DNA of 64,000 bases. It comes from Lepidodermella squamata. Its lineage: Eukaryota; Animalia; Gastrotricha. The stretch spans positions 1,116,001-1,180,000 of the forward strand of contig JBLDXI010000019.1 of the NCBI GenBank assembly GCA_047495785.1, read 5' to 3'. Under the pieces are notes generated by a model. It was not told the origin of the DNA. It saw nothing but the letters and a program-made list of their open reading frames with translations, and searched no databases. Shown here piece after piece: positions 12,953 to 38,307 of the stretch. Position 1 is the first letter of the stretch, and every line of letters begins with the position of its first letter. The position numbers and the translations under genes are program-made.

Positions 12953-15250
12953 TCAGCTTGGAAGCATTAGCTTTTCGATTGCAGCAGTGAGCCTGATGCA
13001 GTCAGCGAAGGAATCTCCCACCAGCCTCAGTGCAGTCGTATAGTAAAATTGAGCAGCCTGATAATGAATAAATTAACGAGCCAGTCTATAAATGAGATAT
13101 CCCAAAAATTACCGAAGTTTTCACCGTGTAAAGCCCGCAAAGAGCAGTCCCATCAAAATTTGGCATGTTGATATGCCCGAGGTCTTCAGAACGGAGCCAA
13201 GCCAGAACATCAGAATTAGTCCAGCTCTTTATTTTCTTATCGATATCTGAACCATGCATAGGCAAAGGCACAGACGAACTATCAGAAGTGGAAACGAGTT
13301 GAGTGACCAAAGTCTTCAGCATGGTACAGCACTCGCAAGGTCCAGCTGATTGGGTATTAACGTTCGGTTTGCTGGCGATTTCTTCATGTTTGGTAGTTTC
13401 CGAAGCTTTTATCGGGTATAATGGCTTATTATCAGCGTCCATTTTCATGTTCGTAACACTGCGAATTTCCTCGAATAATTTACCGCTGACATCTTCCCAA
13501 GGGTACTTCTCCAACGAAAAGTCAACATATAATCTCGCGCCAAGGATGATACCCAGCCAACCAGTTGGCGCGTACCTAAGCCATACATTTTAAAAATTAT
13601 TAAAAAAATCGAGGTTAATTACCTGTATTGCATATTTACAGGAACTAATGGCTTTCCCAATCGGAAAACGTACTCCGCCTCAGTTCGGCACATATTGCTA
13701 AGCTTGTAATACTCGCTGTAGCAAATCAAAATTAAATACGCGTTTTCGACACCCTAAAATGTCAATTAATAAAATCTGCCTTTAACTTTGTCTGACAAAC
13801 TTTAGCCATTGCTTCTACGGTATTGTTGTGCATGTGATCTACATCCATCCAAATTTTATAGCCCTTGTCAAGGAGGAGCTGTCGAATTCTCAGCGCTGTC
13901 TCCTGATTTTTCCAGCAGTAACTTATGAAAATGTGCCCTTCTTCCTTGAGATTTTTGCCATCTCCATCAGTAGGCTCGCTAATGCCGACCGTTTTCAAGA
14001 TACCTTCCTGGCCAACTTTTATGCAATCAAAAGCTTGGCTAGCCTTTATTCTTAGCGCAGGATCTTGTGACTTTTTAACAACTTTCTCCATAAAGCCATT
14101 GAAATTTTCATTAGCGAGGACTTGAAGCCGAATGTCATTGTTGAAAGCCAATGCCCATAGACAATCGATAGCGCGGCTGACTTCCAATTCGTCCTTCGAA
14201 TGTAACATTTCGACAAGCAGAGGTAGCGCGCCCGACTGAGCGATTTTTGCTTTATTATCGTCATTCACGGCCAGATTTGCCAGACTTTGAGCGAGTTCTT
14301 CGACTGAAAAGCCAAGATGAGAATGGTGCTCAGCCCTCGAAATGTCGTCTTTGCTCAATGCCATTTCCAGACATTTCACTAATTTCGAAATTATACCTGA
14401 AAATCCGAAAAATTTACTGTTAGTTTTGAGCAAATGGCATGCTTTTATACCGGACTCGTCTAGAAAAGCAGCAGCTGCTTTTGAATCACTCAGCATACAA
14501 GATATCGAACAAAGAGCGGAAATTTGCCAACTTTCCTCTTCCCAATTAAAATAATATTTCACAACCTGAGTAATAAACTCTTATTTTTTTATGATTTTTT
14601 TATTAAAAATCAAACCTCAACGGCATTCACGGCTTCGTAGTACTCCTTTGATTCAGGCATTTTCGCAATGTTGTGTATAATGTATAAATTAGTTGATATA
14701 AATGAATGCCGTTCGGCGTTGCTTCGATTGCTTTCAGATCCAACATTTTGAACCAGAGTTGGGATCAAATTACGATCAACGAACAATCGGCAAGCATCTT
14801 GACTGACGTCTGATGCTGTGCAAATGGTCGCGAAAACGATTTGCGCTCCATTTTCGGGTTTCACCTATGGGCAATTTTTTTTATTTAATTTGAACCATAG
14901 GTAGATGGATGATAAAATCTGCCGAACCTCTGTTGAAATTCCAGGCCAGCTACTAATGTAAACGCCGACATCCACCAAAAAATCTGAAAAATTGAATTTT
15001 CACAAAAATTTTGAAAAAAGCAAAACAACCAGGTCAAACCTAGATATTTTATTTTACAAAACATATCGCAGATTGCTTTTCGAACGGGTTTCGGTTCTTC
15101 ACTCAACGAAACGTAGATCTTTCGGGCTGTCGCCAACGGTGGGATGGTAAAAAACCCGGCGACCTTGTTGTCATGATGATCGCAAATCGACATAACTTTC
15201 TCGGCGAGGCCCCTGAAATGCTCAACCGTTTGCTTTGTAGCTTTGTCCAT
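12953..15250 (-). CDS. ARM-TIR-SAM protein A (multi-exon)
   Basis: ARM-like repeats (SGALPLLVEML, DCLWALAF). TIR: HIFISYCW..WMDVD..SNMCRTEAEY..GWLGIILG. SAM-like WTNSDVLAWL..FDGTAL. Confidence 0.88.
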
Positions 15251-15300
15251 GATTATTAAATTTCTAAAAATTTATTTGTTAAAATGCATAATTTTTCCAG

Positions 15301-17433
15301 CTAATTACCAAGTAAATGTTCGAGAGAAGCAGTGATTTTAACGCAGTCTATGAAAGAACCATCAAGTAATTGCAACACCGATTTATAATAGAGGTCTATA
15401 ACTGAAAATTTCATGTTATATAAACCAATCAAAGCGTGTCCGTCGAATTGCCCAAACGCACTCGTTAAAGTTTCCATCTTCTCAGCAATCAGCCATTTCT
15501 CAACGTCAGAATTTGTCCATTTACGCACTTTTGCAAAATTGGCACCTTCTGGAGGGTCAAGCTGGACCTTTCGGCTAAACTTTTCGGCTAATAGAGATTC
15601 GAGAAGGCTACAACGCCGACAAAATTGCCCTGTATCGTGAGAATTAACGTCGATTTGAGGTTTTTTAGGCGCTGAGGTTGTTAAAACATTCTGATGATGA
15701 ACTTCCACAGGTTTCTCAACTTCTTGGGAAAACTCGGCTTCAAGTTGACGAATTTCTGTCAACAGACGGTTCGAAACTTTTTCAAAGCTGTGCTTCTCGA
15801 GTGAAAAGTCAATGTAGAGCTTGGTTCCAAGGATAATTCCCAGCCAGCCGGTAGGGAAATACCGATACTGCATGTTGATAGGAATGAACGGTTTGCCCAG
15901 TTTGAATACGTATTCCGCTTCACAACGGCACATGTTCGAAATTCGGTAGCTTTCCGAGTAACAAATCAGCACAACACTCGCGTTTTCAACAGCCTGAGCC
16001 ATGGCCTCCAACGTGCTGCCTCGCATGCGGTCAACATCGACCCAAACCTTGAAGCCCTGATCTAAGAGTAGTTGGCGAATTTGTAGAATAACATCTTGCT
16101 GTTTCCACGAATAACTTATGAAAATGTGCTCATCTTTCGCGGCTTTTTTCTCATTTTTAGCCTCGCTTTTCTCAATAAGACCTTCCTTGCCGAGTAGAAT
16201 AAAATCACGAGCCCGCTCAGCTTTCATTTTCAGCTGTTCGTTTTTCGTGCTTGACATAATTTCGTTCAACTGCTGAACGACGTCTTGCCTTTCCTGGTAC
16301 AAATTACTGCAAATTCAAAAAATTTCGAAGATGGCGAAATCTACCTTAATTTTCGAGCGAATTTCATCGCTGAAAGACAACGTCCAAAGGCAATCTATAG
16401 CGCACCATTGCTCGATCTCTTGTTCCTCAAGTTCATTTGGCGAATCGTGCGGTAGAAGCATTTTGTACAGGTCATCAATCGTGTCGCCGTCAATGATTTT
16501 CATTTTATTGTCATCATTCACGGCCAGAACAGCCAGGCTTGCTACCAGCTCTTCGGCAGAAAAGCCGTTCGACGTGTGATCATCACTAGACATAGCTTCG
16601 TGGAGGCATTGGGTCATTTTCGGAATTATCGAATATTCATCGAGTAAGTCGTTGGTAGCGGTTGTTTCGCTGAGTAAACAGGCGATGGAACAGAACGCGC
16701 TCACCTGCATTTTCTCGTTAGGAACCGCGAAATAATGCTTCAGAGCTTCGATAGCCCCTGCTTCTTCAAATTGCTGTCGAAGTTCGGCTATTTTTGCAAT
16801 GTTATGAATTGTCGATAGCGCATTCGATACAACGCGCTGCTCCATATCGTTGGACAAGCTCAATTTAGCAGTATCGGATTTTATGTATTTCACAAGAACA
16901 GGTAGCACTCCCTTTGCAGCAAATACCTTCGAAAAAACCGATTTTACTTTCGAATAAAAAATATTACGCTAAACCAACTTTTGCAGTTTCAAGGCTTGCG
17001 TCGCTAAACATGCAAATCAAAGCCATAGCACACTCTTTGTGAAAAAGGCGAGAGCGAGCAGGATCTTTCTCCCATCGGAACACGTAGCTGACTGGATTCT
17101 TGTCATTCATTACGTAAATCAAGGATTTAGCGAGAAATTCTTGGTAAAGCAATTAAACTGAAATTGCTCGAAAAATGGGGCTATTTGAATCTTACCGTTG
17201 AAACCGGGGACGGTTTTATCTTCAGCTATAAGCTTCCTCCAAGGGCGCCATTTGAAATATTTGGTGTAGAAGTCCATATGCAATAGGACGGCTTTGGCGG
17301 TGCTGTAAAATTTTGCAATGTCGATCTTTCCGCCGCTACTGGAAATGGTTTTCAGCACTAATGAAGCCATTTTTCGAAAGTATTCCACAGCCTTATCCTG
17401 CGTCCATTCAGCATCGCCATCAGCGTCACCCAT
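15301..17433 (-). CDS. ARM-TIR-SAM protein B
   Basis: ARM-like exons (IHNIAK, DCLWTLSF). TIR: HIFISYSW..WVDVD..CRCEAEY. SAM-like WTNSDVEKWL..FDGHAL. Confidence 0.9.
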
Positions 17434-17505
17434 TTTCAATTTTTTTAAATCCTAAGAGATGAAAAGTCATTTATAGAAAATTTCAAATAATTTATGTAAA
17501 AAAAT

Positions 17506-19887
17506 CTAGTTTGCTGTATCCTCCAAAGCAGCCGTGAATTTAACTGTTAGAGGGAAGGAGTCGTTGCACAAACGTAGCACAGTTTTGAAAAATAAATCAG
17601 GCGCCTGAAAATAATTTTATATAAAAGGCCGTAAGTTCATTTTTTGTTCAACTTACGGAACTTTTCATATCACGAAGACCTGCCAACGCTTGGCCATCGA
17701 AGTCGCCGAAAGATTTAATCAAATCATCAGGAAAATCTTTACTTCGAAGCCATGACCCAACTTGTGAGCTTGACCAGCAATTTTGATTTACAGCTTTGGA
17801 ATCGCTTCTTTGGGATTTTTCAACTGAACTGAAGCTTTCGTTAGCTTCGAGTAACGATTTCGTAAGAGCTTCGACCAAGCCGTAGAGCTTGTCGACTTTT
17901 TCGGACAACTGTCGACAATCGCTACAATTTGGTTTGTCGACTGAACTCGGAATAACAGCCCCGCTTAAATTTGATGGTCGATTCGAAGGCTTTATTGCTG
18001 TTTGATTGGCTTCGCCTCGCTCAAGTACACTAATTTCCTCTAATAATTTGTAGAAAACATCGTTGAATGGCCGTTTCTGAAGTGAAAAATCGACGTAGAG
18101 CCTCGCGCCGATAATAATCCCTAACCAGCCGTCAGGTTGATAGCGGTACTGAAAATTAACTGGAATGAACGGTTTTTGAAGTCGGAAAACGTATTCAGCC
18201 TCAGTTCGGCACATATTTGAAACTCGATAGTCCTCGCTGTAGCAAATGACAACGACGAAAGCTTTTTCTACCGCATTAGCCATAGCTTCCAAGGTTGAAC
18301 CATGCATTCGGTCGAGATCGAGCCAAACATTATAGCCGTTTTCGACTAGAGCATCTCGTATTTTGACGACAATTTCCTGCTGTTTCCAGCTGTAACTCAG
18401 GAATACGTGGCCGTCCTTACGGTTGATGATTGCTTCAGACCTTTTGGCATCTGCCTTGGCTATCATCCCGTCTTTCCCTAATTTTATGAAGTCCAACGCA
18501 TTCCGAGCTTTCGCCTTCAAATCGAAGTTATCTTCATCTTTCGTGATTTCTTCCAGATTGCTCATGCATCCAGAATGCTCGACTAGAATTGATTTTCTCA
18601 CTTCTTCGTTGAAAGCTAGCCGCCACAGGCATGTGATGGCTCGGTCTTTGAGGACCGCATTTTGCGTAAGCATGTTATTCAAATTTGGCAACATTCCGCA
18701 AGTTAAAAGCTGCAAAAATATTATGTAAAATTTATCACAGGAAGCAGTGAAAATCCACCTTAATTTTGTTCTCCTCATTTATTGCCAAATTAGAGAGGAC
18801 GTCTGTCAATTCCTCCGCTGAGTATCCGCGATAGGCTTTCCTTAGCTTCTTCTTCATCGCTTTAGAAACGTAATCGACCAGTCTTGGAATTATGTCTGAA
18901 GATGAAAATTTCGAATTATAGGACTAATCTGAAAACTGAATAAATTACTGTATTCGTCGGCGAAGCTGTTAGCGTCTTTGTCATTTAGGATATAGGACAA
19001 AACACTGAGGGCTGTCATTTGCGCTCGAGGTTCTGTTTCGTCGGGCAGGTAGAATTCCAATATTTCAACTGCATTGCATTGCTGGAATCTTTCCCTGCAT
19101 TCTGTCACTTTTGCAACATTATGAGAAATCGACAGGCTTTGAATTGCCAAGCGAAAGTGAGCCTGCAAATGATTTTGTTAAATTGGAAATTATGTAAATA
19201 TATCGTTGAACTCACGGCTTTTTTCAAATTCGACTTGATTTCGTTATCATTCAGAATTTCCATTAATTTGGGGATGATCCCATTTTCTGCGAAAAACTTT
19301 ACACAAAATTGATTACTTGGAATTTGAATAGGCTAGAGATTACCTTGCTAGCCCGATAGCTGCAATCGGTAATGACTACTACGACCCGAAGCAAACTAAT
19401 CGCATAAGTCATATCGCTGAGATAATCACATTCCTTGACGGCTTGAAGAATCAACTCTGAAATATTCATGAAATAATTTTATGGAGAAAATGTGATAGTT
19501 TCAATTACCCATGAAATCAGTCCCGCATATCCCTTCAATTGCAGGGACCCGCCACGCTCTCGCCCATGAACTCATCGAGTTGCAAATTCTTCGATAGACG
19601 AACGACGTGAATGCAAAACGAAGCCTGTTTTGATCATCAGCCGGCTTCGATGCGACCATGGCTGAGATTGCATCAGCCCTGTGACGTAATTCTTCGATCG
19701 CCTCTTCCTTCGAATGTACTTCGGACGTTTTCTTCAACCCAACGCCAAATTTGGTCAATAAATCATCGGCATCTTCTTCCTCCAAGTCTTTCGCTGAAAT
19801 TGCTGGTTCTTGTGATTCGGCTGAAATTTCTTCGGCGTCGAATAGTTCATTGTTAGGCTCCTCCGATTCTTCAACACTGGATGCCAT
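17506..19887 (-). CDS. ARM-TIR-SAM protein C
   Basis: Acidic N-terminus MASSVEESEE, ARM-like exons. TIR: HVFLSYSW..WLDLD..CRTEAEY. SAM-like WSSSQVGSWL..FDGQAL; last exon APDLFFK..AN*. Confidence 0.88.
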
Positions 19888-19936
19888 TATATAAATAGTA
19901 TTCACCTAGAAAATTTAATTTCATTCAAAAAAGATA

Positions 19937-22078
19937 TCACGAAGAATTTTCGCTCACAACAACAGGTAAACGTTCAAGAGATTCAGAAAACTTCAAAACA
20001 TCAACAAGCGAATTATCAAAGCACTTTGTTAGCGAGGAATAAAATATTTCTGGTGATAACGTTTTCATCTCGTAAATCACAGATAAATGCCGCCCTGTCA
20101 TGTCCTTCAGCAAGCTAGAAATTCGAAAATTACTAGATAGAGATTGGGTTTCAAGCCATTTTTGAACGTCCTGACCGGTCCATTTGTCAAGTTTAGATTT
20201 CAGGTAGGCGATCGACAGCAATTTTCGCCCCGCTCCACTTCCAGGCAACGAAATTTCCAGCTGTTTTTGTTTAGGTGGATCGACGATTTTCGCAGCTGAG
20301 TGAGTCGAAGGTGCTTCTTCGTTCTTCGAGTTCGATAGCAAGCCATTCATCTCAGTTAGCATTTTAGAGATCGCTTCTTCAAACGGGGTCTTCACCAGGG
20401 ACATGTCAACGTAGAGCCGAGCTCCAAGAATCAACCCTAACCACCCGTCAGGTCGATAACGTCGCTGCATATTGACCGGAACGAAAGGTTTTTGAAGTTG
20501 AAAAACGTACTCAGCCTCAGTTCGGCAATTCGGGCTCTGTTTATAATCTTCGCTGTAGCAAATCAGAATCAGGCGAGCTTTCTCGATAGCAGATGCCATT
20601 GCTTCTAGCGTGGATCCTCGCATTTCGTCAACATCCATCCAAGTTTTGAAGCCTTTGCTCTTCAAAACATCGCGGATTTTTATGCAAGTTGGTTGGTTTT
20701 TCCAGCAGTAACTAATGAATATGTGCCCGTCATTCGGCGAAGGCACAGCCGATTCACTGCTTTTTGATAAGTTTTTCTTGCCATTTTCGATGAAATTCAG
20801 AGCCTTCGAGGCTCGAAGACTAAGACTCGGCTTGCTTTCATCCGCAGCTAGTTCCTTCAGTTTCTTCAGGATGGATTGGTTTTTTAGAATTTGCAGGCGT
20901 TCGTTTTCACTGAAAGAGAGTGTCCACAGGCAATCAACGGCTCTGAGCTGCTCTTTTTCTTCATTCGAATTCAAAATGCGATCTAGAACAGGTAGAATTC
21001 CCGCGGCGATGAATTTCGGTTTATTGGATTCGCAGATCATTATTTGGTTCGCCCCATCAGCCAATTCTTCGACTGAAAAGCCGAGGTACTGATGATTCTG
21101 AATGCTCATAGCTTCGTCCATGAACGCTATCAATGTCGGGATTATTCCTGGAATAAAAATGAAAAAGAATCATAAATCGAGGGGCTGGGCATTTCGAGCC
21201 TAAAGTTGAATTTTTAACATTGAATAACTTTTCGAACCGTTTTCATCGGCGAATTTCGCGCTGTCTTGCTCGCTGGAAATGCTGGCGATCAGCATAAGAG
21301 CCATACATTCCCAGACCTTCTGCTTGCAAGTCAAGTAGAACTTCGCAGTATCCACAAAATTCAGCTCGGCCAACTTTTGCCGACATCCCGCGAAACGTGC
21401 GATGTTATGGGGAGTTCCTATGTGGTTTTCTATCATTCGATTGACTTCAGCCGAATTTTCGATCATTTTGCGCAGCTCAGGGCTATTCAGAACCTGGCTG
21501 CACCACTTGAGATACGCATCGCCCTCAAAAGCCATGCACATCGAGAAAGCTTCGCTGAAATTGGACCAAGTTACAGCTATCGAGGATAGATAATATGCCC
21601 ACATGAGCATTGATTTCGAAGTCGGCAACTTGCCGATATCAAACCATTGAACACATCTCGCTAATACCAGTGGCAAATCGTGACTAACTGCTTGGGAATC
21701 AATGATTTCCTTCCTGTGTGAAGTGATTTCCAAATAACTGCACATGAAGATCGATTTCACGACGTGGCGAGCTTCGATATTTTCCAGCAGATCTTCCTTA
21801 GTTTTGGCAGCCCGGTCTACGCATGCGCCAAGGTCTTGAACTAGTTTTTCGAAGGTAGCAACGCCAGTGTTAGATTCACTCAAACCGCCATTTCTCAGCG
21901 AACCTAGAGCTGACTGGAGGCGATCGCGGTCGAATGCGTAGAAATCAGTTGGAGGTGAGTCAATTGACGCGGAACTGGTAGCTTTGGGTGATTTCCCAGA
22001 ATTCGAATGGTCACTTCCTTCTCGGTTTGATTGAATAGTTTTCTTCGATGGAATCACGTGCGATTTTTTTTTATTCAT
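19937..22078 (-). CDS. ARM-TIR-SAM protein D (two exons)
   Basis: ORFs 21200-22078 and 19937-21133 are joined by a phase-1 intron. TIR: HIFISYCW..SPNCRTEAEY. SAM-like WTGQDVQKWL. Confidence 0.9.
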
Positions 22079-22202
22079 TTTTTGATAATTGAGTCACCTA
22101 AAACAATAGATTTACTCATTAAAACAGCAGCCGGAAAATAAAAATTGCACAATATAAATTGCATCGGGTATCGAGTATATCATCGGGTATAATTTGGCAG
22201 CT

Positions 22203-25200
22203 CTAATCGTCATCCCACAGGCGATCAAGGGCGCCTAAAACTCTCAGTAAGCCCTGCAGAGGCCCGTTGTAGTGTTTCGATACTGTTTTATAGTAAAACT
22301 CTGGGGCATTCGATTTCATGGAATGCAAAGTCTGAAGCATATCGCCGTTGAAATCGTCAAAAGCGTGTCCAAATCTAAAATCAGAAAATACTGATTTTGC
22401 CGAAATCAAAATTCGAAACTCACTCGGACAATTTTTCGCTTTCAAGCCACTTGGCGACTTCCTCTTTCGACCAAGTATTGCACTTCAATTTTCGTACGGA
22501 TCTTGGTCTCTCTTCAATCGGATCGTGAACAGCAGTACTGTGCCCGCCTCCAATCGCCTGCCGAGGTTGGGCGGGTTCAGTAGAGGGTTGCTGCGATTCT
22601 GAATTCGATGAAGGTGGCGCCTCCAAAGACCCGAAGGCTTTTATTTCTCCGATCAACATTTCGAAGGCGGTGTCAAATGTCCGCTTCTGAAGCGACATGT
22701 CGACGAATTTTCGCGACCGAACCATAATTCCAAGCCATCCATCAGGGAAATAGCTTGAAAAATATCAGGAATTCAAATAAAAAGACTAATGAATTTCCAT
22801 TCTTTACTGGTATTCCAAATTAACAGGAACAATCGGTTTGCTGAGAGCATGAGCGTATTGCGCTGGACGATTGATAAGAGGTTCAGAGCAAATTAATAAA
22901 TTTAGGTTGATTAATCACCTTCAGTGCGACAGGGGTTACTTTGCTTGTAAGAGTTCGAGAAGCAGATCAGTACAACGGAAGCTTTTTCAATCGCATCAGC
23001 CATTGCTTCAAGCAAATCTCCGTGCATTTTGTCAATGTCCATCTAGATATAGGTAAGATATATTTATATAATAGATTTTCTCAAATTCAAAGATGGAGCT
23101 AACCCAAACTTTGAAATTATTTTTCATCAGTTCTTGTCTGATTTTCAAAACAACAGCCTGTTGTTTCCAGCTGTAGCTGATGAAAACGTGGCCACCATTA
23201 GGCGAGGCCGACTTCCGGCCGCCACTGTCTTCGTTCGAAGCCTCAGCCTCGGCAACTTTGACGACCCATTTTTCAATAAAAGTCAACGCTTTCGTTGAGT
23301 TCCGGCGCACATCAGCCGAGGTTTCGGCAGAACTGCTGAGTTTCCGCATTTGACCCATAAAATCATACTGGCTTTTCAAAATTTGGTTTCGAGCCGATTC
23401 TTCGAAGCTCAATGTCCATAACAGATCAACGCCAAGATTTTGCAGATTAGCTTCGCCAGTCTTCAGCAAGTAATCAATGACTTCCTCGACCTTATTTTCC
23501 ATTAAGGTGGATTTAATCGAATCGTTAACTGCGATCAAAGCAAGTCCCTCGATCAGTTCTTCCAGCGAGTAGGCGCAAGACATAGTTTCAGCGCCCCTCA
23601 CCAGTATATTGCAGTATCTGTTAGTATCTTCCATTGCTCTTTTCACATATTTTACTAGATGAGGTACAACATTCTGCTCGTGAGCCATTTGTGCCGCTTC
23701 AGGTGTATCGCTGAGAATGTGGGCCAAACACAATATCACGAGGGATTTCGTTAAATCGGACATATTTAGATATTCCCTGAGAATCTAAAACGAAAATTTG
23801 CCAAATGTTCACGATATTGTAGCCAAGTTACATTAACGGCATCGTATTTGATGAAATCGCCTCGTAATTCGATACTGCGGGATATGTTGTAAGTCACGTT
23901 CAAAAGAACGAAATCCAGATACTACGAGCATAGATGAATGCTGAAAACTGAATTTATTAAAGATTAAAAATGCTCACTGTATCTTTTGAGCTCAGGTTTC
24001 TTTCCGCTTTTTTCCGCTCGTTTAAATGATCCAGCAAGAGCTTTATGACGCCAGCTTTTCCCAAATCCTGCATTCATTAAGCTGAATTAATGCTTCAATC
24101 GGTAAAAGATAACACACGATTCGAAATTGCGGGCAGCAATCTGTAAAATTCCATAGACCAGATACTAAGGCGAGGCTGCAGTGATAATTTTCTGTTACAG
24201 CGATCCCATTTTGAATGTAGAACTGCAGGTATTTAAACACAATATCTGGAGAAAATACCAAATGATAAGCTTTCAAAGGCTTTGCAGTTGGGAAAACAGG
24301 TCAGACCTGCGTATTTTTCACTCAACAGAGCATCGAGCAGATCTTGCTTCCAAATTTTGTATTGCTGATAACTGGTGCTCATCAAGTTGAGAACAGTGGC
24401 GATTTCGCGACTAGCCATTTTATCAGGAGTGAGCTCGGCATGCTTCGCCAAAAATTTCACTCGAATTTCCGTCTCGCTTTTGATGTCACTCCTTGCGACG
24501 AAGTTCGAATTCTTCTTGGTACAGAAACCCTGCTTCGGAACGAAAGGACCATACGCATCGGCTTCATCCTCTTTATTCTGGAGACGTCTCTGCCAAGCAT
24601 CGTATTCGTGGTAAAACTCCCTTATACGGACGCTCCTGCGAACATCCTCGAATGTGAGATCACCAGTCGTCTCCGACATTTTATAAACGGCCATAGCCCA
24701 ACCTTGACTCATAGAATGCTTGCAGTAACTCCGAAATAGCAGAGAGCCGATTTCTTGATCAGTTTCATCAGGGCTCGAAACGAATGTCATAACAAATTGA
24801 ATAAGATTTTTCTTGGCAAATATGTCTTTCTCTTCGAATTCGCCACGAGCCACATCACGCCGAACTTTCCACAACAAGCAGTAGTAAGCATTAGCGATTT
24901 GTGACACATCGAAACTCATATAATAGTCGTCCTCGCTATTTTCTATCGCCTTTTCGATGCCGTGTTGTAAAACTGAGCTCAAAGCAGCAAAATTATCGAC
25001 CAAAAAATCGCCGAGACCAACTCTCGCCAAGCAGAACGAGGCGCAAAACCTGACAGCTTTATTGTCAACGCCGCTAAGTTTTTCCAGAACCTATATATTA
25101 TTATAAATAATTTCATTGGCTAAAATTTTATTTCAACTCACTTGTTGAGCCTTCGTCGCCCTTATTTTTTCAAAACTACCAGCTTCAAGAGTCAGTTGAT

Positions 25201-25885
25201 TGATTACATTCAAAACTGACTTCACAACGTGCCATTTTTGCTTTGGAAAATTATTGGAATAAATACAATTAATTTTTCAGGACCAAATCCTAACCGGTGG
25301 ATATTCCTCGGGTGGGGTTTTTTCTGCAATATGCTCGAGAAAATAACAAACAGTTTCCAAATATTCGACCAGAAGAGGTAGAATGCCGCTATCGAGGAGG
25401 CTCTGTAGGTTAAAATTCATCAAAATCGCCGCAATTTCGGGGCTAATATTACATCTTTAAACGCAGAAAACTTCGAGTAGTTGAACAATGAGTTGAACAA
25501 ATTAATGGAAAATTTGTAAGTCGCATCATCCGTTGTTGGTCCAACGTCGAACAAGTACTTGGCTAGCGTGATAGACAAATCTATTTAAATATACCATCTT
25601 AATAAAAAAAACTAGTTCGAATGATCATTTACCGACGTATTTGCCATCAACTAGCACCTGTGCAACATCTGTGTCCCAGTTATTCCAGTCAAAATAAGAT
25701 CGGCTAATTTTCCACATAACGGCTCTTGACTCAGCATTGACAGGTCCATTTTCAAGTAGAGCGCATTTTTCCAAAATCGAGATGCGCCTTCTTGTTTCTT
25801 CAATGCATTCTTCAGCCGTGGTAAAGCTAGCGTTATCATTAGCGATATCGCCACCCAAATCAGGGGTGGGAGTGGGGGATTGCAT
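22203..25885 (-). CDS. ARM-TIR-SAM protein E with extended/duplicated N-terminal helical region
   Basis: Spliced frame from MQSPTPTP through ORF 24233-25030 to the ARM exon 23032-23763. TIR: HVFISYSW..W|MDID..SNPCRTE|AQY. SAM-like WSKEEVAKWL..FNGDML. Confidence 0.82.
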
Positions 25886-26515
25886 AGTTATAAAAACTGT
25901 GCCTATACAAAAAAATATTGCCACTAAATAAGCCAGATATTATCGCTTTTTACTTCATCATCATTCCGAAATTTACAGCGTTCGCTATTCGGTTAATTAT
26001 TCATGATAGCCGATTCGTTTTTTACGTGTGCGGTCAACCGATCAATAATTTTTTTGGCTCATGGTTTTGCAAGGATCGCCAGGTCACTGCGCGTCTTTGT
26101 TTACCCAATGGGCCTATTTGCGAGCAGGCGATCGCCAAGGATAGAGACTACCAAAGTTGCGCAATGTGTATGTGTCATTCTATCCTCGAAGGTAAACAGG
26201 TATTAAGGTGCTAAGTAAGCAAATGGGTACATCAAAAGACACTGCCGCTGCGGTTTCCACAGCTCCGCCCATGTCACATAAAGCAATATAAATATCAGGA
26301 TATGAGCTCTCAATTTCAACACTTCAAAGAAATCAAGCACGCGTATGAATATCTAATGTTCGCGCTATCGCTTCAAAAGTCACTGGAGGGTGGTGACGCA
26401 AGCTGAATCTTAATAAGGCAAATCGCCACGTTGCCTCACAGTCAAAGTTACACCTTAACGCACGCGTCTCACGGAAAACGATATTACTAGAGCTGAAACA
26501 ATAAAAAGCGGAACG

Positions 26516-26807
26516 ATGCATCTCGCGTTTCTTCTGCATTTTTTTCTAGCCGTCACATTACCAGGTAAGCGTGAACACAACAACACTTCACTGTAACTCG
26601 CATTCTTTCCATTTAGCTGCCGCGCTATGTGAAGATTGGCTCGTGTTCGGTAAGATCTTTTGAGTGAACGATGTACCAAGCATCAACAACTTTTCAATCT
26701 ATTTTATAGAGGGTATCGACTTTGCATTTGTTGCCGTCTGCTCAACATTTGTCATCATAATATTCGCATTAACGATCGTGATGTGTCTCAAATTGCCTGG
26801 ACCATGA
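26516..26807 (+). CDS. Signal peptide + single-TM microprotein, family member 1
   Basis: 3 exons, phase-1 introns: MHLAFLLHFFLAVTLP|AAALCEDWLVF|EGIDFAFVAVCSTFVIIIFALTIVMCLKLPGP*. Confidence 0.8.
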
Positions 26808-26873
26808 TAATTCTTTGTTAATAAATGCTTGGCCTTTTCTAACTTTCGTAATGTTCCATTTTAGAATTTTGAA

Positions 26874-27166
26874 ATGAAATTTGAAATCAGAGGCAAATGT
26901 TTGGTGCAATTTCTAATTTGGCTTATACTACCAGGTAGATTATCCCCGTTAAACCGTCAGGATATATTTTTCAGTTTTTATTGCAGTTCTCGTGAATTGT
27001 CAAGAACGCTTTACGCTAAGTAAGTTATATTGAAGCGGTAAATTTGAAATCATTGCTTATTTTCGTAGATTTATTCGAAATATCTCTCATCGCGCTATGC
27101 TCCAGCTTCGTAATAATCATCATTGGACTTTCAATCGTAATGTGTCTAAAAATCAAAAGCTATTAA
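26874..27166 (+). CDS. Signal peptide + single-TM microprotein, member 2
   Basis: MKFEIRGKCLVQFLIWLILP|VLVNCQERFTL|NLFEISLIALCSSFVIIIIGLSIVMCLKIKSY* (exon 2 has an alternative in-frame acceptor). Confidence 0.8.
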
Positions 27167-27317
27167 CTGATTTCCCCATATATTTCTGTAGCCTTTCAAT
27201 ATCAGTATTTGTTTGCTGTGCCAATAACTAGTTTGCTTTTCCGCTAACAACGAGAATTTTGATTTTACAATATAACTTAATCAACTTTTAGAGTCATTTG
27301 AATAAATTTGAGGGCTC

Positions 27318-27559
27318 ATGTCTTACCTAAATACTCATCAACTGTTGCTGTTTACTCTATTAAGTTTAACGTTTCCCGGTGAGTTCATTTTCAAATTGTG
27401 TAACTTTTTAATATCCATGTTTTGTTGACAGATCTGGTAGAAGGGGCTGAACTGGCATTGGATACGTTTTCTGTGGTTTTGCTAACTTTATGCGGTGCTT
27501 TCCTCATCATAATCCTCGCTCTCTCAATCGTCATATGCATCAAAGCAAGACAACCATGA
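27318..27559 (+). CDS. Signal peptide + single-TM microprotein, member 3
   Basis: 2 exons: MSYLNTHQLLLFTLLSLTFP|DLVEGAELALDTFSVVLLTLCGAFLIIILALSIVICIKARQP*. Confidence 0.8.
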
Positions 27560-28184
27560 ACACTTTAAAAATTAAATTCTCATTTTGATATTTGATAAAG
27601 CATCGCTCACTCTTGAAATTTTATATCGCTTTGATTCGATAGCTTGTTTGAAAAAATTTATGATACAAAAGCAAGATTAAACGATCGCTAATAAAAAGGC
27701 GTTATTTTGCATCAAGGCTACTTGTGAACACAAGGTAAACATTTGTAGAGCGTGTCTAATAATGTTTGCTGAGATGTGACCTGTAACCATTTTGCGCTTC
27801 AAATGCGCACATTCTATTTACATAGTCGAAGATAAAGATGCGACACAACGATTAGCATATCTTGCAGACATGACTTGAAATACGACGATAAAGATTGATG
27901 GCTACCAATTGGCTCTCACTTATCACTCTCGAATGGCGTGCTACAAGTGGACGCTTGCGAAGATCGGCGATGCGGAAGGGAGGTGTAAATAAGAGCAGGT
28001 TAATGCTCATCAACTGGGACAGATAATCAGTGACCTTGGTCATCAGACGAATAAAGTGATAATGACAGCGCTGTGTAGAGACACAAACCATAGTCAGAAC
28101 GAATAATCGCTCCTCTCGTCACAATCGCTCTCCTGCTCACCTTGTAATTTTGTGATCGCTCACACAATTTACGACACAGCTCAA

Positions 28185-28494
28185 ATGGCGCACTTCCGAA
28201 TTGGGTTGCGCCTATTCGCAAGTGTAATGCTTGCAATGATTTTGTTTCCAGGTCCGTTTATTTCTTTCAAAATATTAAATTATGATCGATGATTCTATTT
28301 CATTCAGCCCTCGTAAGCTGTCAAACCGTCGCGCTAGGTAAGATATTAGTTTTTGCTATAACAATCAACTGAAATACTATTTGTTCATTTCAGACACATT
28401 TGAAATAGTACTCATAGTACTGTGTTCAGTGTTTCTAGTCATCATCATTGCACTAATCGTCATTCTGTGCGTAAAGGTACCTAACCCCAGTTAA
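28185..28494 (+). CDS. Signal peptide + single-TM microprotein, member 4
   Basis: MAHFRIGLRLFASVMLAMILFP|ALVSCQTVAL|DTFEIVLIVLCSVFLVIIIALIVILCVKVPNPS*. Confidence 0.8.
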
Positions 28495-29501
28495 AGGAGC
28501 CAACTGATTTAACGAACCGAATTTTACGCACAGCCGCGGCACTACTTCATCCGGTGGCTCGCCACTAAATTCAAAGGCGAGATGATCTACATTTATAACG
28601 ATGTTTAATAAATCAAAATCCTGCTACTCAACCTATGTACACTAAATGCTACCTGTAAATAAACTGGCTAATAAGTTTCAATAGCTGAGTTGCAATATTT
28701 GAGTATGCGAGAAGATGAACTAACTGATTCCGTCTATTACTGTCAAAATTGGCTCCTTACTTCCTACGCTTACTTGCTTTGGAAGCAGCCATGCATCATA
28801 TCCTCAATGAGTGAGAATATGGAGGACATTCAATGAGAAAAATTTTCGATGAGGACAGATTCAGAGAAAATTTCCGCTTCTTCGTAAAACGAAAGATGCA
28901 TTGATCCTAAGAGTGCGGACGAAAGTAGAAGTGCAAAGAGTGCTTGTAACGCTTAAATTATACCTACCTAGAAGTAAAAACGGTTCACTTTCACTAAGGA
29001 AATCGGTAGGATGTGGATTTGAAATTCTATGATCCTACGGCACGGAGCGACTGTTTTTCGCGGCGTTTCTAAGGAAGCTGCCTTTCACAACTAAAAATAC
29101 TTAGCACGTGTAAACATTTGATTTTAATTTTCTCGTAGCAAAATGAGAAATATCAGTTTTTAATAAAACTAGCGTTTATGGCAACGGTACTGTTCTCACA
29201 CACGCGTCCACTAAGTCGAGTCGCGAAACTCATGTGCTTCGCCAAATTTCTCGTCAGGCAGGCACCAGGCACCAGTGGATGCCGACCCCTTGCGAAGAAT
29301 ACTCAATTTCTTTGTTGCAGACTGCGAACTTGATTTGAACCATCTTTCGTCTTCTGAGTTATTGCACTCGGGATATATGATACGCCTGATTAACAATGAC
29401 ACTTTGATTACCGCTTATCGCCTTTGAAAGTGACTGTAAATACTTTATTGCAAAATATGTGAGCGTCGTAAGATTCTTTCATCTGAATTACTGAATATTA
29501 T

Positions 29502-29759
29502 TCACTCAGTTACTACTGCAGTGCCCTCATATTGTGATGTCGGATTTGGTATTTTTACGACAGCCACTCCCATGAGCAGCATGATTATTGTTAGGAAGAT
29601 GAAACACAGGAGTACCAGGCACGTTTCTAGGGCGTCTAGGTGAGGACAATGAGTAGTTTTTAGTAGTCAGTATTAAGCTGGCTTACCTAGTTTATCTGCT
29701 TTTACTGCGTTTATTTGCTCCAAAATGATGCTGACAATGAAGAGCATAGTTGATCGCAT
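29502..29759 (-). CDS. Signal peptide + single-TM microprotein, member 5
   Basis: MRSTMLFIVSIILEQINAVKADKL|DALETCLVLLCFIFLTIIMLLMGVAVVKIPNPTSQYEGTAVVTE*. Confidence 0.75.
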
Positions 29760-29860
29760 ATCTGTCGTTGATAGCCAGACCAGTGCTATTTGTTTCGTAA
29801 TAATTTTGCGACCTAGGAAGAGCGAAGTAATTTTATTTTGTATGAAAAGTAGCTCTTTCA

Positions 29861-30166
29861 CTATGTAGACACGGTTGGATTAGGAACTTTAACAATTATG
29901 AGTCCTACGAGACCCAGAATGATAGCGAGGAATATGAAGCACAAGACCACCAAGCAGACTTCCAGAGCATCTGTATTGAGACAGGAATAATTTTGAATAG
30001 ACGTATTGTGAAGTATAATTTACCCATCGCTGCTGAAACAGGTGCTGCGAGCGAAGCAAAGTAAATTTATATTATTCATTAAATTTTTCGGGGATGCATT
30101 ACCTGGAAAAAGGGCAACGTTAATTGCGAGCACCATGCAGATTTCGTTTGATTTTTTGCGAGACAT
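29861..30166 (-). CDS. Signal peptide + single-TM microprotein, member 6
   Basis: MSRKKSNEICMVLAINVALFP|APVSAAM|DALEVCLVVLCFIFLAIILGLVGLIIVKVPNPTVST*. Confidence 0.78.
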
Positions 30167-30375
30167 TTGAGGCGATCGATCGAATTGATGATTAGATCAA
30201 GTAGTCGCATGTCTGCCATAAAATGACAAAGCATATGCCGGTGTGGCACAGGAGCCTTCGGTCAACAATTATCCCATGTTTAATTAGTCGCGGCAATTGC
30301 TCTCACTTGCTCTAAGCTGTCATGTAAATAGCCACTCACTGCTTTTGTTGTAATAGGCTTGTTATTGCTGTCACA

Positions 30376-33300
30376 ATGAGGACGGCGCGGCTCAAAGAAT
30401 TGCCGCCGTCGGTTGTCGACGAATTTATTAACATGCAGCTAAAGAAATCGCAGAACGGTGATGACGTCTTGGCTAATGTCAACTCCACAGATATCCCCAG
30501 CGGAAAATTGAAAGTTGAGTATCGCCTGATAAAAAAGAAGAAGCGTGATTCGAAAGGCGGATTCGTCCTGCCCGACGTGAGTGGCAGCCCTCATTCGCTT
30601 CGCTACACATCACCAACGCCGAATTCTCAGCGGCCTGCGGGTGGACAGATAATTTTGAAACCGATAGAGCACAACGCGGTGCCTCAAGCGATGCCCGAAC
30701 GGAAAATTGTCAGAACACCAGAATTGATCAAATTGTCTTTACAGAGACTCGGCTCGTTTGAATCTGTCATGTTTCCGTTTCGAGGCTCCACTGATATGGA
30801 TTCTATACATAAACAATTGCCTGCTATCGAGCAAACTTCTGCCCTCAGTGGTAACTTTATTTAAATGGAAGAGTAATTACAATATCACTGGCTTTACTTT
30901 CAGCTAATCCTTCCACTATCACTCACAACTTTACTTGTCCGAACTGCAAATTCAATATCGTGAAAGGTGCGAAATTTTAATATTAAACCAGACTAGCCAT
31001 AATCTTTGCATGATTCTTAACATTTTTAGAGCTCTTTGTCACCGTAACTGAAGATGGCAGCTCTCAAAGCTTACATGAAAACAGAAGACATCACAAATGT
31101 AAGTTGAAATTAATTTTGTCATTGTGAGTAGAATTGTGCATGACTAACAAAAACAGCCGCCGAAAGATCCGATTCAAACACAGGGTCTGTAACAATGGGA
31201 ACTCAAACCGAAGCAGATGCCATATCTGGTTCTCCCGCTTCTCCGAAAATGTCCCCAAAAAGTAATGAAATTAGAAGTCGCGTGTCATCTTCACTTGAGA
31301 TGACAGTAAAAGAGAAAACAAAACCGGTGTCTCCATCTCCTCCTCGAATTCCTACTCCTGCTCCTCCACCTGTTGTAGTAGATAGTACTAGTGTTACTAA
31401 AGGTACTTCTGACTTGAGTTTGCTTGGGTGAATTTTAAGTTGGTTTATGTTAAATTGATTGATTTAGTAGCATTGTTCTGCTATTTTTTATTAAATTTTG
31501 GAAAATAACGCTTATACGTTCGTTTTTCCTCATTAGAAACCGAGGCTGAACCTGAACCAGCTAAATCTCATCGAGAGTCAGCCAAGCCCGATCATCTGAG
31601 CATTGAAGATCTAAAATTGATCGAAAAGTGCCGTAAAATCGTGAGAGCAGCCGAATCCAATGGAGATACGGAACAGATTCATTCAGCCATTCGTCAGCTT
31701 TCGGTAATTGCTCAGAAGCTGCTAACGCCGATGAGGGGCTCCGATCTTCATCACAATCGATTTGTTTGCGGGAAAATCGGAGATATGCTAGTTGAGGAGG
31801 GCTTCGATATGCGGCTCTACGCGATTCTACACGAAATGACAGCTGAGTGGAGCTTTTTCAGCCAAGAAGAAAATTATCATGTCACATTCAATTTATTCAC
31901 CTGCCTTACGTCATTCCTTAACCGGAGTTTGAAGCTTCCAGCCGTAATTTTCCTCAATCTTGCTTTTTCATTGTAAAATCTGTCATTTTTTCCACAGAAT
32001 TTGGTCGAAAACACAAAGTTTACTGGGGATATATTGCAAATTCTGGGCTATAAAAAGTATATAAATCAGTTGACGCAGAAAAATATTTGGCGGTTTTTCG
32101 ACGCATGTCTAACAATTCTTTGTTTGCTGGGTCGACTTGAAGCGAATATCGAATCTCTTCGATCTCTTGGCACCATTAATTGTGCGAAGAAATTTCTGTC
32201 AACCGGAGATCTAGGCTACGCTGGCCTATGGCTCCCCGCTCTGGTTACTATGAACCAGGTCGCGAATGATGACGAGATCGGAAATGCGATCAAGGGAAAA
32301 CTTCCAGATTTCGTGCCTACGGTTTGCAGTTACATCACATCGTATTTCGAGGACGAAAGATCAGCAGGCGATGAAACTTATCGGTCTATGCAGATGTCTG
32401 TTCGAGACAATTCGGACCAAGCTGCCGGCGAGTCTCAGCGTCAAATAAATGCTACAGGGATGATGCCAGTTGGTGCTGGTGTTGTTCTGGTTGAAGCTGT
32501 AGACGCATTCTTGCGATTCCTCGGCGTTATTATAGCCAAAATTCGCGAGATGAGCAGAGACTTCCAGTTGACGCAATCTGAACTCGACGAACTGACCGGG
32601 TGCTCGATTTTCTTGATGCAATTACCACATCCATCTAACCAGAAGCAATACGAGTCTAAGCAATTGATTGTGAGCGAGTGGCGAAAACTCGTGAAATCCG
32701 GCGTCGAAATAGGCGATTTCTGTGAAGAGGCTGCCTCGCTATTGAATCTCGGCCTCGGGCATGATCAAAATGATCTTAAAGATGAGATGATTCAAGCTCT
32801 CAGGGATTTGATTTCGAATGAATTCAACGAGGGGACGATTAAGGTGGAGGCTGAAGCTTTGTTAGCGAAAATCCAGCACCCTCGTGTGCCAACTCCGGCC
32901 GCGAGAAGCGTTACGGAAACAATAGAACACTCGCGGGTTCAAAATACCAACGAAATTCCCGATGTTGACCGGGAAAAAACCGAAGCTCAAACTAACAATG
33001 ATAACGGTAATCACCAGATTAAAACTTGACGTAGTTTCTATATTTCGGTTTTTATTTCACAGTTTCCGACTCTTTTTCCCTGAATGAAATAATATGGAAC
33101 TCCTCACTGGTTTCGTGGCAGAATCCGGAAGTTCGAGCCTGGATCCGATCCATCGGTCTCCGCAAGTACGAGGAGGAGTTCCAAGAATACGACGGGCCTA
33201 TGCTACTAGCATTGTATGACGTTCGCCGCGAATCACCGCAATACTTCCAGACGGAGATGGTGGCCAAATTGGGCGGCGTCTTCAATAATTTACTCAAATT

Positions 33301-33400
33301 CACAGCCCAGCTAACTAAACTCATCGCAAACAATAATCTAGGCTCGGGATCAGCCGCGGGTGGTGGAGATCAGCTGTCACTAGCTGTGAGCGGAGTATAA
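30376..33400 (+). CDS. ARM-like + SAM-like protein lacking a TIR domain, with long low-complexity N-terminus
   Basis: Multi-exon, with helical-repeat exons at 31617-33006. The last exon WQNPEVRAWIRSIGLRKYEEEFQEYDGPMLLALY..SPQYF..LLKFTAQLTKL matches the C-termini of genes A-E. No FISY/TIR motif. Confidence 0.78.
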
Positions 33401-33618
33401 ATTCTAAAACTTTGTGCTGTTTCAATGAAATACTTCGTACAATCAATAATTTGTAGCCAAAATAGCTGCTCCGTTGTTGTACCTTAGAAATAAACTGTGT
33501 TTCAACGTTTACTTCAAGGTTAAAAAATCGAGGTCGATAATTTTTACATCAAAAAGCTGTCATAATAATAATACATTTGGCGGCATAATATTGAATATAA
33601 TTTTAATGTATGGGTTAA

Positions 33619-33986
33619 TTATCCGACGTATCGAATTTTCATGAGACACACAATAACAGCGATGCCGAATAGAGTCACAACCAACACGCAACCCAGCACG
33701 ATGCTGATGATGTCGCGAGTGTCTGAAGAAAGAAATAACGTAAAACATGAGAAAAACAGGGCAATAACTCACTTAACACGACCTGACAATTGACGTGGGC
33801 TGTTGCAGGAAAAAACGAAGATTTTTTTATATTACATTTTTATTTAATGCCGTTGTTGTTATTGCAGTTACCTGGGAGGAATAACATGAAGCTCACAATG
33901 ACACCAAGCAGCTTCTGCCATCGTTTTTTACTGAGGCCGGGCAACGCCGGTGTGGCGCGAAAATGCGTCCGAAACAAGTTAAACAT
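33619..33986 (-). CDS. Signal peptide + single-TM microprotein, member 7
   Basis: MFNLFRTHFRATPALPGLSKKRWQKLLGVIVSFMLFLP|AHVNCQVVL|NTRDIISIVLGCVLVVTLFGIAVIVCLMKIRYVG*. Confidence 0.75.
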
Positions 33987-34121
33987 TCTATGCGCCTAAA
34001 ATTTGGGAACAAAAACCCATCAGAATTTTCGAGCTGTGTATTATGAAAAAACTTCATATAGGAGCTATAAATTTCAACTGGTAATAATTAAATTTGCTTA
34101 GTCTTTCAATGCAGGATCCGA

Positions 34122-34385
34122 TCACACTCCGAACAGCTTTACTTTCCATAAGCACAACACCAACGCGATGGAAAACAGGATAATTATGATCAAACTTCCA
34201 ATCACCACGTATATTATGTCCGATGTCGCTGAAAATATCGAAGCAAATAAAAATAATTTAGAAAAAGGTATTGGTTTACTTAAAGCCTGGCAGAGGACAG
34301 TATCCGGAAATGCGACCAAGAAAAGTACCAACAGCTGCATATAATACGTTATTGAAGATTCGAATCGCATTTTAGCGAGAGACAT
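34122..34385 (-). CDS. Signal peptide + single-TM microprotein, member 8
   Basis: MSLAKMRFESSITYYMQLLVLFLVAFPDTVLCQAL|TTSDIIYVVIGSLIIIILFSIALVLCLWKVKLFGV*; the intron is stop-free and in frame in the ORF track. Confidence 0.78.
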   Translation of the reverse strand: MSLAKMRFESSITYYMQLLVLFLVAFPDTVLCQALSKPIPFSKLFLFASIFSATSDIIYVVIGSLIIIILFSIALVLCLWKVKLFGV

Positions 34386-35005
34386 TTAAAAATTGCTCAA
34401 GTCAACGACTGCACGGCTATGCGCTTTGTGAGCAGCCCAGCTAGGACAATATATTCGTTATTCTACCGAGATATAATATTATTTCCGGTTGGACTGATGA
34501 GGCACGTGTAGATATGGTTGGTATTCGGAAATATTTCTGTCTTGCGCTGGGAGTGTTTGTTACGGGTTTGTTTGCCTGTGCATTTATTTCGACACCGCGC
34601 CATTGCAGCGGTAATTTTTCTGGTGCTTTATGACTGGCGTGAGGGGCGCGAACGTTTACGCTCTCGAAAGACGCTATCAATGACATCGTGTGCGTATATT
34701 TTGTCGTGCCGCAATGCAAAGATTCTCAACAGAGTTGCGCGTTTCTCCCGCGCCCATTTGATACCGTTAAGATGAGTTGATGGTTTATTCTCATTATTTT
34801 GTGTTTATGGCCTCAACCATAACGAGAATTCTCGGAAGTAATAAGTAATCAGCCCACCTTGGTTTTACGGTAGATAGTGGTTTTCGCTGAGAAGCGTCGC
34901 TGTTTTGCGCCGCTTGACTGTCACGCGTCTCGTGTAAATGATTCTGCTGCGTCATTTGTATCGCTCTCAAACAGGGGAAACACTTCGAGTACTCAGAGGC
35001 AGTCT

Positions 35006-35323
35006 TTATTTCAAAGATCTGAGTTTGAACAAGCACAGAATAACAGCGATGGTAATGAGCGTTAGTGTCAATGCCAAACCAAGCGAAATTACTATTAAAT
35101 CTGAATTACCTGAAAAAACCAGCTTCATTTTCAATAGTTCATGAGATTAGATAGCCAACTTACTCAAGTACAATCCACCGCCAGTAGAATATTGGCAATT
35201 GGATATGCCTGAAAAACAATACAATATGCTTCGCAAATTTTTATTTTACGAAAACGTACTTCCACTCAATAGGGCGGAGATCCATACTAAGTTTGGTAGC
35301 AAACGCTTGTTAGATACCAACAT
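35006..35323 (-). CDS. Signal peptide + single-TM microprotein, member 9
   Basis: MLVSNKRLLPNLVWISALLSG|SISNCQYSTGGGLYL|SNSDLIVISLGLALTLTLITIAVILCLFKLRSLK*. Confidence 0.75.
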
Positions 35324-35437
35324 AAACCCTTAGATTTGATAAATTTCTAGTGGAAAAGCTAAAATATGCAATGCAAATATATCGGAGAACTGAAAATTTA
35401 TTGAGACCCAACTATGACAATATTTTGTTTCAATCAC

Positions 35438-35706
35438 TCAGGGACCGAACAGCGCCACTTTCCACGAGCATAGAATCAGCGCTATTATCAGGAAGCAAAT
35501 CACGATTGTCGTTCCAACAATGATAAGAATAACCTCTGATCGCGCTAAAGATGAACGCAATAACCCAAGTTAATTATTTATTATTATTCAATATCCAACT
35601 TACTCAGCGGTAACGAAGGTTGCTGGCATGAAGCTTGGCTGACCAGATGTAACAGTATAATCAGTGATAAACTGAATGTTAAGTTGGATGCTTTACTCAA
35701 AAGCAT
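35438..35706 (-). CDS. Signal peptide + single-TM microprotein, member 10
   Basis: MLLSKASNLTFSLSLIILLHLVSQASCQQPSLPL|TRSEVILIIVGTTIVICFLIIALILCSWKVALFGP*. Confidence 0.75.

Positions 35707-36906: not shown

Positions 36907-38307
<1,401 letters not shown>

Follow-up and report, generated by a model that had tools for sequence, protein, structure and literature searches.

Head-to-head gene pairs usually persist because their promoters overlap, and in plant NLR pairs such as RRS1/RPS4 and RGA4/RGA5 the layout reflects functional pairing. A combination of ARM, SAM and TIR domains is known from SARM1, an ARM-SAM-SAM-TIR NADase with SAM as the oligomerisation module and ARM as the regulatory module. 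Short type-I adaptors (DAP10, DAP12, FcR-gamma, CD3-zeta) and FXYD proteins share a simple build: behind the signal peptide come an ectodomain of ~10 residues, in many cases containing Cys, an acidic start of the single membrane helix, and a juxtamembrane Cys with a basic residue. Here, we describe a locus in the gastrotrich Lepidodermella squamata that combines a tandem array of ARM-TIR-SAM genes (Units A-E), a TIR-less gene with a SAM tail (gene G), and ten genes for small membrane proteins (microproteins; mp1-10), arranged around two head-to-head junctions. The window, i.e. the whole stretch of DNA analysed, comprises 64,000 nucleotides (positions 1,116,001-1,180,000 of contig JBLDXI010000019.1, referred to as C19) of an assembly of 121.2 Mb in 151 contigs. 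The published assembly of the species is given as 122 Mb in 157 contigs with 43% GC and is based on multiple displacement amplification (MDA; PMC11660948); GC in the window is ~43%, and none of the window resembles human DNA.

The locus resembles each of the described systems in part. Like conserved head-to-head pairs, it has opposite-strand starts less than 1 kb apart that are kept in a deeply diverged second species; unlike these, no conserved promoter motif was found at the locus, and trans-splicing may uncouple the start spacing from the promoter. Units A-E have the same three domain types as SARM1, but in the order ARM-TIR-SAM and with a single, family-specific tail, and they are most closely related to uncharacterised proteins of molluscs, annelids, echinoderms and tunicates. 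Orthology to SARM1 was considered and rejected because TIR_2 precedes a single C-terminal SAM-like tail. As in the plant NLR pairs, an immune-type TIR gene diverges from a partner gene, but the partner is a membrane protein of 59-81 aa rather than a second receptor, and the arrangement is found at a single locus of the family. The microproteins resemble the short type-I adaptors and FXYD proteins in build only, and this resemblance is a lead. In contrast to them, the microproteins have no sequence homology and no YxxM or FXYD motif, and their tails are 5-18 residues; no immunoreceptor tyrosine-based activation motif (ITAM) occurs in the tails encoded by the ten genes.

Conservation of the locus in a second species

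In the window, five tandem ARM-TIR-SAM genes run on the minus strand from 25885 to 12953 and are opposed to mp1-4 (plus strand, 26516-28494) across 630 bp. Further along, mp6 and mp5 (minus strand, 30166-29502) are opposed to the plus-strand gene G (30376-33400) across 209 bp, and the ten microprotein genes are completed by a third cluster, mp10-7 (minus strand, 35724-33619), that lies tail-to-tail with G. Much of this layout had been recognized in the original prediction, made from the letters of the sequence. The start codons that it gave for Unit A (25885, minus), mp1 (26516, plus), mp6 (30166, minus), and G (30376, plus) are all present, and its divergent gaps of ~630 and ~210 bp measure 630 and 209 bp between start codons. 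The third cluster, placed by it directly after the TIR-less gene, lies 218 bp beyond the stop codon of G. Its "TIR array" does contain ARM, TIR, and SAM, but consists of five separate genes. Coordinates of all features are collected in Table 1.

A second species with the same arrangement was found in metagenome scaffolds deposited in ENA. It is a single species, and its distance from L. squamata is known from sequence divergence only. P0001, which matches the array (see below), sits on an 18.5-kb ENA scaffold (L002/L003), and near-identical DNA is found in two further assemblies (L004, L009). The orthologues of mp1-mp6 are one-to-one and in the same order, with one extra gene between mp5 and mp6 in the relative. 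Both head-to-head junctions are kept, with spacers between start codons of 473 and 157 bp compared to 630 and 209 bp in the window, such that both have the geometry of bidirectional pairs (opposite strands, 5´ ends less than 1 kb apart, taken from start codons) in both species. At the locus, the two species can be aligned in coding DNA only. The last exons of the microprotein genes have 68-88% identity to those of the relative, with a proportion of synonymous differences (pS) of 0.64-1.0, i.e. at saturation, and dN/dS of at most 0.13 where it could be computed. The block that leads from the array over mp1-4 and mp5-6 to G, including both junctions, is older than the split from this synonymous-saturated species. 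The families could have turned out to be unlinked in relatives, which would have spoken against the original prediction; instead, array, microprotein genes, and G are linked in the second species.

Conservation ends at G. On L009, the 2.2 kb past the SAM exon of G contain no microprotein exon and no match to the window, which indicates that cluster 3 is not kept at that position and that synteny stops directly after G. The next gene of the relative is an unrelated 107-aa secreted open reading frame (ORF).

The mirror-like layout was considered as a chimera of MDA-based assembly and this was rejected, because independent metagenome scaffolds, from three ENA assemblies, show the same layout and because neither arm is a sequence repeat of the other.

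Table 1. Positions of genes, coding segments, and spacers in the window and in the relative (scaffold L003)
Feature	Sequence	Position	Strand	Description	Basis
Unit E	window	12953..15250	-	ARM-TIR-SAM; introns split TIR and SAM domains	ORFs, Pfam TIR_2, tblastn, SAM-tail HMM
Unit D	window	15301..17433	-	ARM-TIR-SAM	ORFs, Pfam TIR_2, tblastn, SAM-tail HMM
Unit C	window	17506..19887	-	ARM-TIR-SAM; intron splits SAM domain	ORFs, Pfam TIR_2, tblastn, SAM-tail HMM
Unit B	window	19937..22078	-	ARM-TIR-SAM; start 124 bp past Unit A stop	TIR_2 9.5e-22; SAM tail 8.5e-17; ARM vs structures 1e-6
Unit A	window	22203..25885	-	First ARM-TIR-SAM gene; long N-terminal extension; start 25885 opposite mp1	ORFs, Pfam TIR_2, tblastn, SAM tail, relative's orthologue
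Spacer Unit A/mp1	window	25886..26515		Divergent; 630 bp; 473 bp in relative	
mp1	window	26516..26807	+	59 aa; exons 26516-26564, 26617-26649, 26710-26807; tail ends KLPGP	Coordinate model
mp2	window	26874..27166	+	63 aa; three exons; 84% identity to orthologue	Coordinate model
mp3	window	27318..27559	+	62 aa; two exons (second intron lost)	Coordinate model
mp4	window	28185..28494	+	65 aa; three exons; tail KVPNPS; 88% identity to orthologue, dN/dS 0.04; possible extra exon after	Coordinate model
mp5	window	29502..29759	-	68 aa; two exons; tail begins KIPNPTSQ	Coordinate model
mp6	window	29861..30166	-	64 aa; three exons; tail KVPNPTVST, identical in relative	Coordinate model
Spacer mp6/G	window	30167..30375		Divergent; 209 bp; 157 bp in relative	
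Gene G	window	30376..33400	+	Orphan all-helical protein with family SAM tail, without TIR	N-terminus kept in relative; Pfam, family HMM
G coding segments (approximate)	window	30376-30864, 30904-30968, 31195-31431, 31537-31976, 32001-33007, 33062-33400	+		Splice sites partly fixed
mp7	window	33619..33986	-	81 aa; three exons; first of third subfamily; tail-to-tail with G	Coordinate model, tree
mp8	window	34122..34385	-	70 aa if spliced; 51-nt intron in frame, 87-aa unspliced form also open	Coordinate model
mp9	window	35006..35323	-	70 aa; three exons	Coordinate model
mp10	window	35438..35724	-	75 aa; two exons; head-to-head with polyubiquitin	Coordinate model
ARM-TIR array with Unit A orthologue	L003	up to 9529	-	50% identity (ARM exon)	
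Four mp genes	L003	9992-12105	+	Last exons	
Three mp genes	L003	13572-12729	-		
G orthologue	L003	from 13734	+	46%, 42%, and 34% identity by exon	

HMM, hidden Markov model.

Possible reasons for the persistence of the junctions

We favor the view that this is one old, locus-specific gene neighbourhood rather than a mirror-duplicated two-gene module, and that its junctions have been kept by overlapping promoters (probability roughly 55%). The promoter regions of the facing genes would overlap to such a degree that pulling them apart would cause damage, and this would preserve the junctions, in particular that of mp6 and G. We infer such promoters because of the short distances and the retention of the junctions; in the 157-209 bp between mp6 and G, only promoter regions that are shared or that overlap would fit. 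Within this neighbourhood, G could enter oligomers of ARM-TIR-SAM proteins, or cap them, by way of the SAM tail that it has in common with them, and act as a TIR-less regulator or scaffold. The microproteins would be independent small membrane subunits with helix and tail constrained by some membrane partner. The neighbouring TIR proteins are a legitimate candidate for this partner, given the importin-alpha-type grooves predicted for their ARM repeats.

Several observations weigh against this reading. Neither spacer contains a conserved non-coding block, and a 10-mer and a low-complexity word are all that the orthologous spacers of Unit A and mp1 have in common. Distance and conservation make up the case for shared promoters. 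Acceptor-like sites and the close spacing of the array genes suggest that transcripts may be trans-spliced or polycistronic, either of which would make the distance between start codons a poor guide to promoters and weaken the argument from spacing. The comparison is with a single relative; microsynteny between the two species may be generally high, in which case retention of the block may need no special constraint. Finally, conserved microprotein tails next to ARM genes of peptide-binding type leave room for a real physical link.

One alternative is that accidents of history placed these genes side by side in a compact genome and that they have stayed unrearranged in the relative, without shared regulation or function. 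Outward-facing flanks around a strand-switching cluster are expected by chance in about 1 of 4 cases, and the geometry alone is not significant; conservation in the second species makes the layout more than chance. The lack of conserved non-coding sequence in the spacers and the reliance on one relative, with possibly good microsynteny in general, would fit such an accident, as would the gain or loss of a microprotein gene between the species and the presence of an unrelated 441-aa gene inside the array of the relative. On the other hand, order and orientation of at least eight genes are intact at saturated synonymous sites, synteny breaks directly after G, and independent promoters are physically unlikely where only 157-209 bp separate the start codons. 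We consider mere adjacency unlikely on this balance, and prefer overlapping promoters within an old neighbourhood.

Gene G and the relationship between the two arms

The original prediction suggests that the mirror image of the two arms goes back to an old inverted duplication of a module in which an ARM-(TIR)-SAM gene and a microprotein gene had a bidirectional promoter in common. In the full form of this model, both halves would then have expanded, one large gene would have lost its TIR, and the products would function jointly as membrane anchors, baits, or effectors. The fact that both junctions are kept in the second species is in line with this.

The SAM tail is the part of G that connects it to the array. 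The last exon scores above the cut-off with both Pfam SAM_1 (25.1 bits) and SAM_2 (22.4 bits), and matches an HMM made from the C-termini of mollusc-type ARM-TIR proteins at 5.4e-11 over model positions 3-65, which identifies it as the ARM-TIR-SAM family's own SAM tail. The body of G is an orphan. It has no Pfam match at E up to 10, no paralogue in the 121-Mb genome, and no tblastn similarity to the array genes, and no segment of G matches a TIR domain in Pfam or tblastn searches. In searches of 5.8 billion clustered proteins and of 1.84 billion representatives, its own orthologue was the only relative found. A full HMMER profile search returned, besides the orthologue, one repetitive 2693-aa protein at 5e-6. 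A scan of JGI metagenomes with the N-terminus of G gave no match, and a word search with the G orthologue found only itself. By hhalign, G has a probability of 15% against the ARM-TIR family, in a weak but collinear match on the ARM region, and 0.2% against Unit A and its orthologue. The AlphaFold2 (AF2) model of the main exon is all helix and, at a pLDDT of 35, unusable; look-alikes by protein language model are all of ARM/HEAT-type families (0.84-0.86) and rated as leads only. In conclusion, G was correctly described as TIR-less and as having a SAM tail, whereas its designation as an ARM gene was not confirmed by Pfam, HMMER, or hhalign.

The SAM tail does not tie G to its neighbours in particular. 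SAM domains were compared by pairwise identities, as ~50 shared columns are too few for resolution in a tree. The G SAM is 65% identical between the two species and 29-35% identical to every other family member: 29-31% to Unit A, 33-35% to mollusc proteins, and 33-35% to SAM tails from elsewhere in the same genome (L022), which are among the nearest. At SAM model position 16/17, both Unit A in the window (22380-22440) and G in the relative (L009 11520-11585) have a phase-2 intron, which is absent from the respective orthologues, i.e. Unit A of the relative and G of the window; this points to frequent lineage-specific intron loss in the family's SAM tail. A special kinship of Unit A and G was considered on this basis and rejected, because unlinked paralogues on contig C20 (L012, L013) break at the same position. 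The intron must therefore go back to the ancestor of the family, and shows only that the tail of G originated as a genomic copy.

The microprotein genes are the one element that is clearly paralogous between the arms; the large genes share the SAM tail only, without a special affinity of G to Unit A. In the tree of microproteins, each physical cluster forms one clade (support 100/98 for mp7-10 and 100/99 for mp5, mp6, and the extra gene), mp1-4 each group with their own orthologue, and all duplications among mp1-6 are older than the species split. Separate clades for clusters 1 and 2 are as expected if each had one founder. The tree would thus fit an old copying event that placed one microprotein gene in inverted orientation, an event that need not have involved the large neighbours. 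The two divergent spacers share words and k-mers only at the level of shuffled sequence.

Taken together, duplication of a module as originally proposed can draw on the kept junctions, the one-founder pattern of clusters 1 and 2, the family SAM tail of G and its intron of shared position and phase, the weak collinear match and the ARM/HEAT look-alikes of G, the peptide-binding type of the array ARM repeats, and the strong conservation of the microprotein tails. Against it stand the lack of detectable similarity between the body of G and Unit A, a G SAM that is equally far (~30-35%) from local and mollusc members, spacers that have nothing in common, and an intron that belongs to the family rather than to Unit A and G. 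Other ARM-TIR-SAM loci are without microprotein genes, cluster 3 is unconserved and pairs with ubiquitin (see below), and tails of 5-18 residues are too short for sensing nucleotide signals. The model has no positive support beyond geometry, and we regard it as improbable.

Confinement of the association to one locus

A profile of the last microprotein exon, applied to the whole 121-Mb genome, finds exactly the ten places in the window and nothing else better than E = 7. At least seven other ARM-TIR(-SAM) loci exist, on C33 (two genes), C20 (two genes), C59, C55, and C6 (an inverted pair), and at two places upstream on C19. In 135 kb around seven of these other loci, the microprotein HMM, run in six frames at full sensitivity, gave a best E of 0.44, and four further metagenome contigs with ARM-TIR genes contain no microprotein exons. 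The association of microprotein and ARM-TIR genes thus exists at one locus only. Even here, it does not apply to all clusters: the third is not kept past G in the relative, and its outermost gene, mp10, lies head-to-head with a polyubiquitin gene (six ubiquitin repeats in one 458-aa ORF, 36931-38307) ~1.2 kb away, which shows that microprotein clusters also face genes unrelated to TIR or SAM.

A stronger functional model would have the microprotein tails read by the ARM grooves of the array proteins, with G bridging or capping through SAM and two ancient bidirectional promoters securing co-expression of a membrane-tethered TIR module. We consider this combination very improbable. A functional linkage would make this the first example of an animal in which TIR enzymes have dedicated membrane micropeptides as partners, and would provide a handle on localisation and control of cytosolic ARM-TIR-SAM proteins, which are uncharacterised across several phyla. 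Three results are solid: the microproteins form a previously undescribed family on which purifying selection is strong, the orphan gene G took over the SAM tail of a TIR family, and the microsynteny of the block has persisted beyond the point at which silent sites are saturated. They can assist annotation in a phylum about which little is known and offer candidates for work at the bench, and provide no evidence of a new kind of system.

On C6, the two TIR matches have identical scores and lie 3.6 kb apart on opposite strands (443784-444152, plus; 447751-448119, minus), near the end of the 450-kb contig. This pair represents either a recent inverted duplication or a chimera of assembly or MDA.

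The ARM-TIR-SAM array

Pfam TIR_2 matches Units A-E at 1e-20 to 1e-22 where the domain falls within one exon, the SAM-tail HMM matches a C-terminal SAM-like tail of the family type in all five units (searches used single exons; intron-split SAM pieces were joined for the pairwise identities), and collinear tblastn matches with P0005 and P0001 extend across the array. On these matches, Units A-E are assigned to the ARM-TIR-SAM-tail family, each gene with ARM repeats, TIR_2, and the family SAM tail. Compared with structures in the PDB, the ARM repeats resemble those of peptide-binding importin-alpha and designed armadillo proteins (~1e-6). The closest database entries, with 28-39% identity, are ARM-TIR proteins that are uncharacterised and come from bivalves, gastropods, cephalopods, an annelid, a sea urchin, and a tunicate; several metagenome proteins are also close. 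The family is widespread in spiralians, echinoderms, and tunicates.

The intergenic gaps in the array are 124, 49, 72, and 50 bp. Inside the array of the relative, the opposite strand carries an ORF of 441 aa (L003 4555-5880) whose start resembles a signal peptide; this ORF has no Pfam match and no counterpart in the window.

The microprotein genes

Translation of the spliced models, made locally, gave an open frame for all ten microprotein genes. All introns are GT-AG, and the first exon, encoding the signal peptide, ends in phase 1 in every case. A middle exon of 21-45 nt is present in 6 of the genes; the corresponding intron has been lost in the other 4. The last exons of all ten belong to one family. 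The products, 59-81 aa in length, have a signal peptide, an ectodomain of ~10 residues (often with Cys-Gln), one membrane helix, and a tail of 5-18 residues. An acidic residue precedes the helix, Cys-x-(x)-Lys is found at its end in most copies, and the tails are of the types KLPGP, KIKSY, KARQP, and K[VI]PNP... An interpretation of the small ORFs as exons of one larger receptor gene was rejected, since a separate start codon (ATG), signal peptide, and stop codon are found in every one of them, and at least mp1 has an AATAAA signal just past its stop codon.

That the original prediction was right to treat these as genes follows from the purifying selection seen against the one-to-one orthologues (68-88% protein identity at pS 0.64-1.0 and dN/dS of at most 0.13), which shows that they are not chance ORFs. 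It follows that the microproteins are functional, and they are more constrained than G. Scans of JGI metagenomes with mp4 gave no match, and the sole match in a word search with mp6 of the relative was itself. The family is best explained as a lineage-restricted group of putative type-I proteins that grew by local tandem duplication into three sub-clusters.

The gaps between mp1 and mp2 and between mp2 and mp3 are 66 and 151 bp; like that of the array genes, this spacing resembles an operon and could be due to trans-splicing. Acceptor-like pyrimidine-AG sites are found 2-27 nt upstream of the start codons of mp2, mp3, mp4, mp5, and G.

In the relative, mp1 is a single-exon gene (L003 9992-10468; L009 5166-5636) for a protein of 154-156 aa with a proline-rich ectodomain of ~100 residues, followed by the same helix and KLPGP tail. 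It follows that the "micro" size is not fixed in the family.

A block past the stop codon of mp4 is conserved between the species (window 28476-28600; L003 12090-12215). It has a conserved donor, AAG/GTACCTAA, within the last codons, followed in both species by an acceptor, cacag, and an ORF of ~24 codons. The downstream ORF reads PRHYFIRWLATKFKGEMIYIYNDV in one species and PQHYFIRWLASKYHGGVLYMDVEV in the other, with several of the differences synonymous, and its frame relative to the main ORF differs between the two. The block probably marks an alternative fourth exon that would lengthen the cytoplasmic tail.

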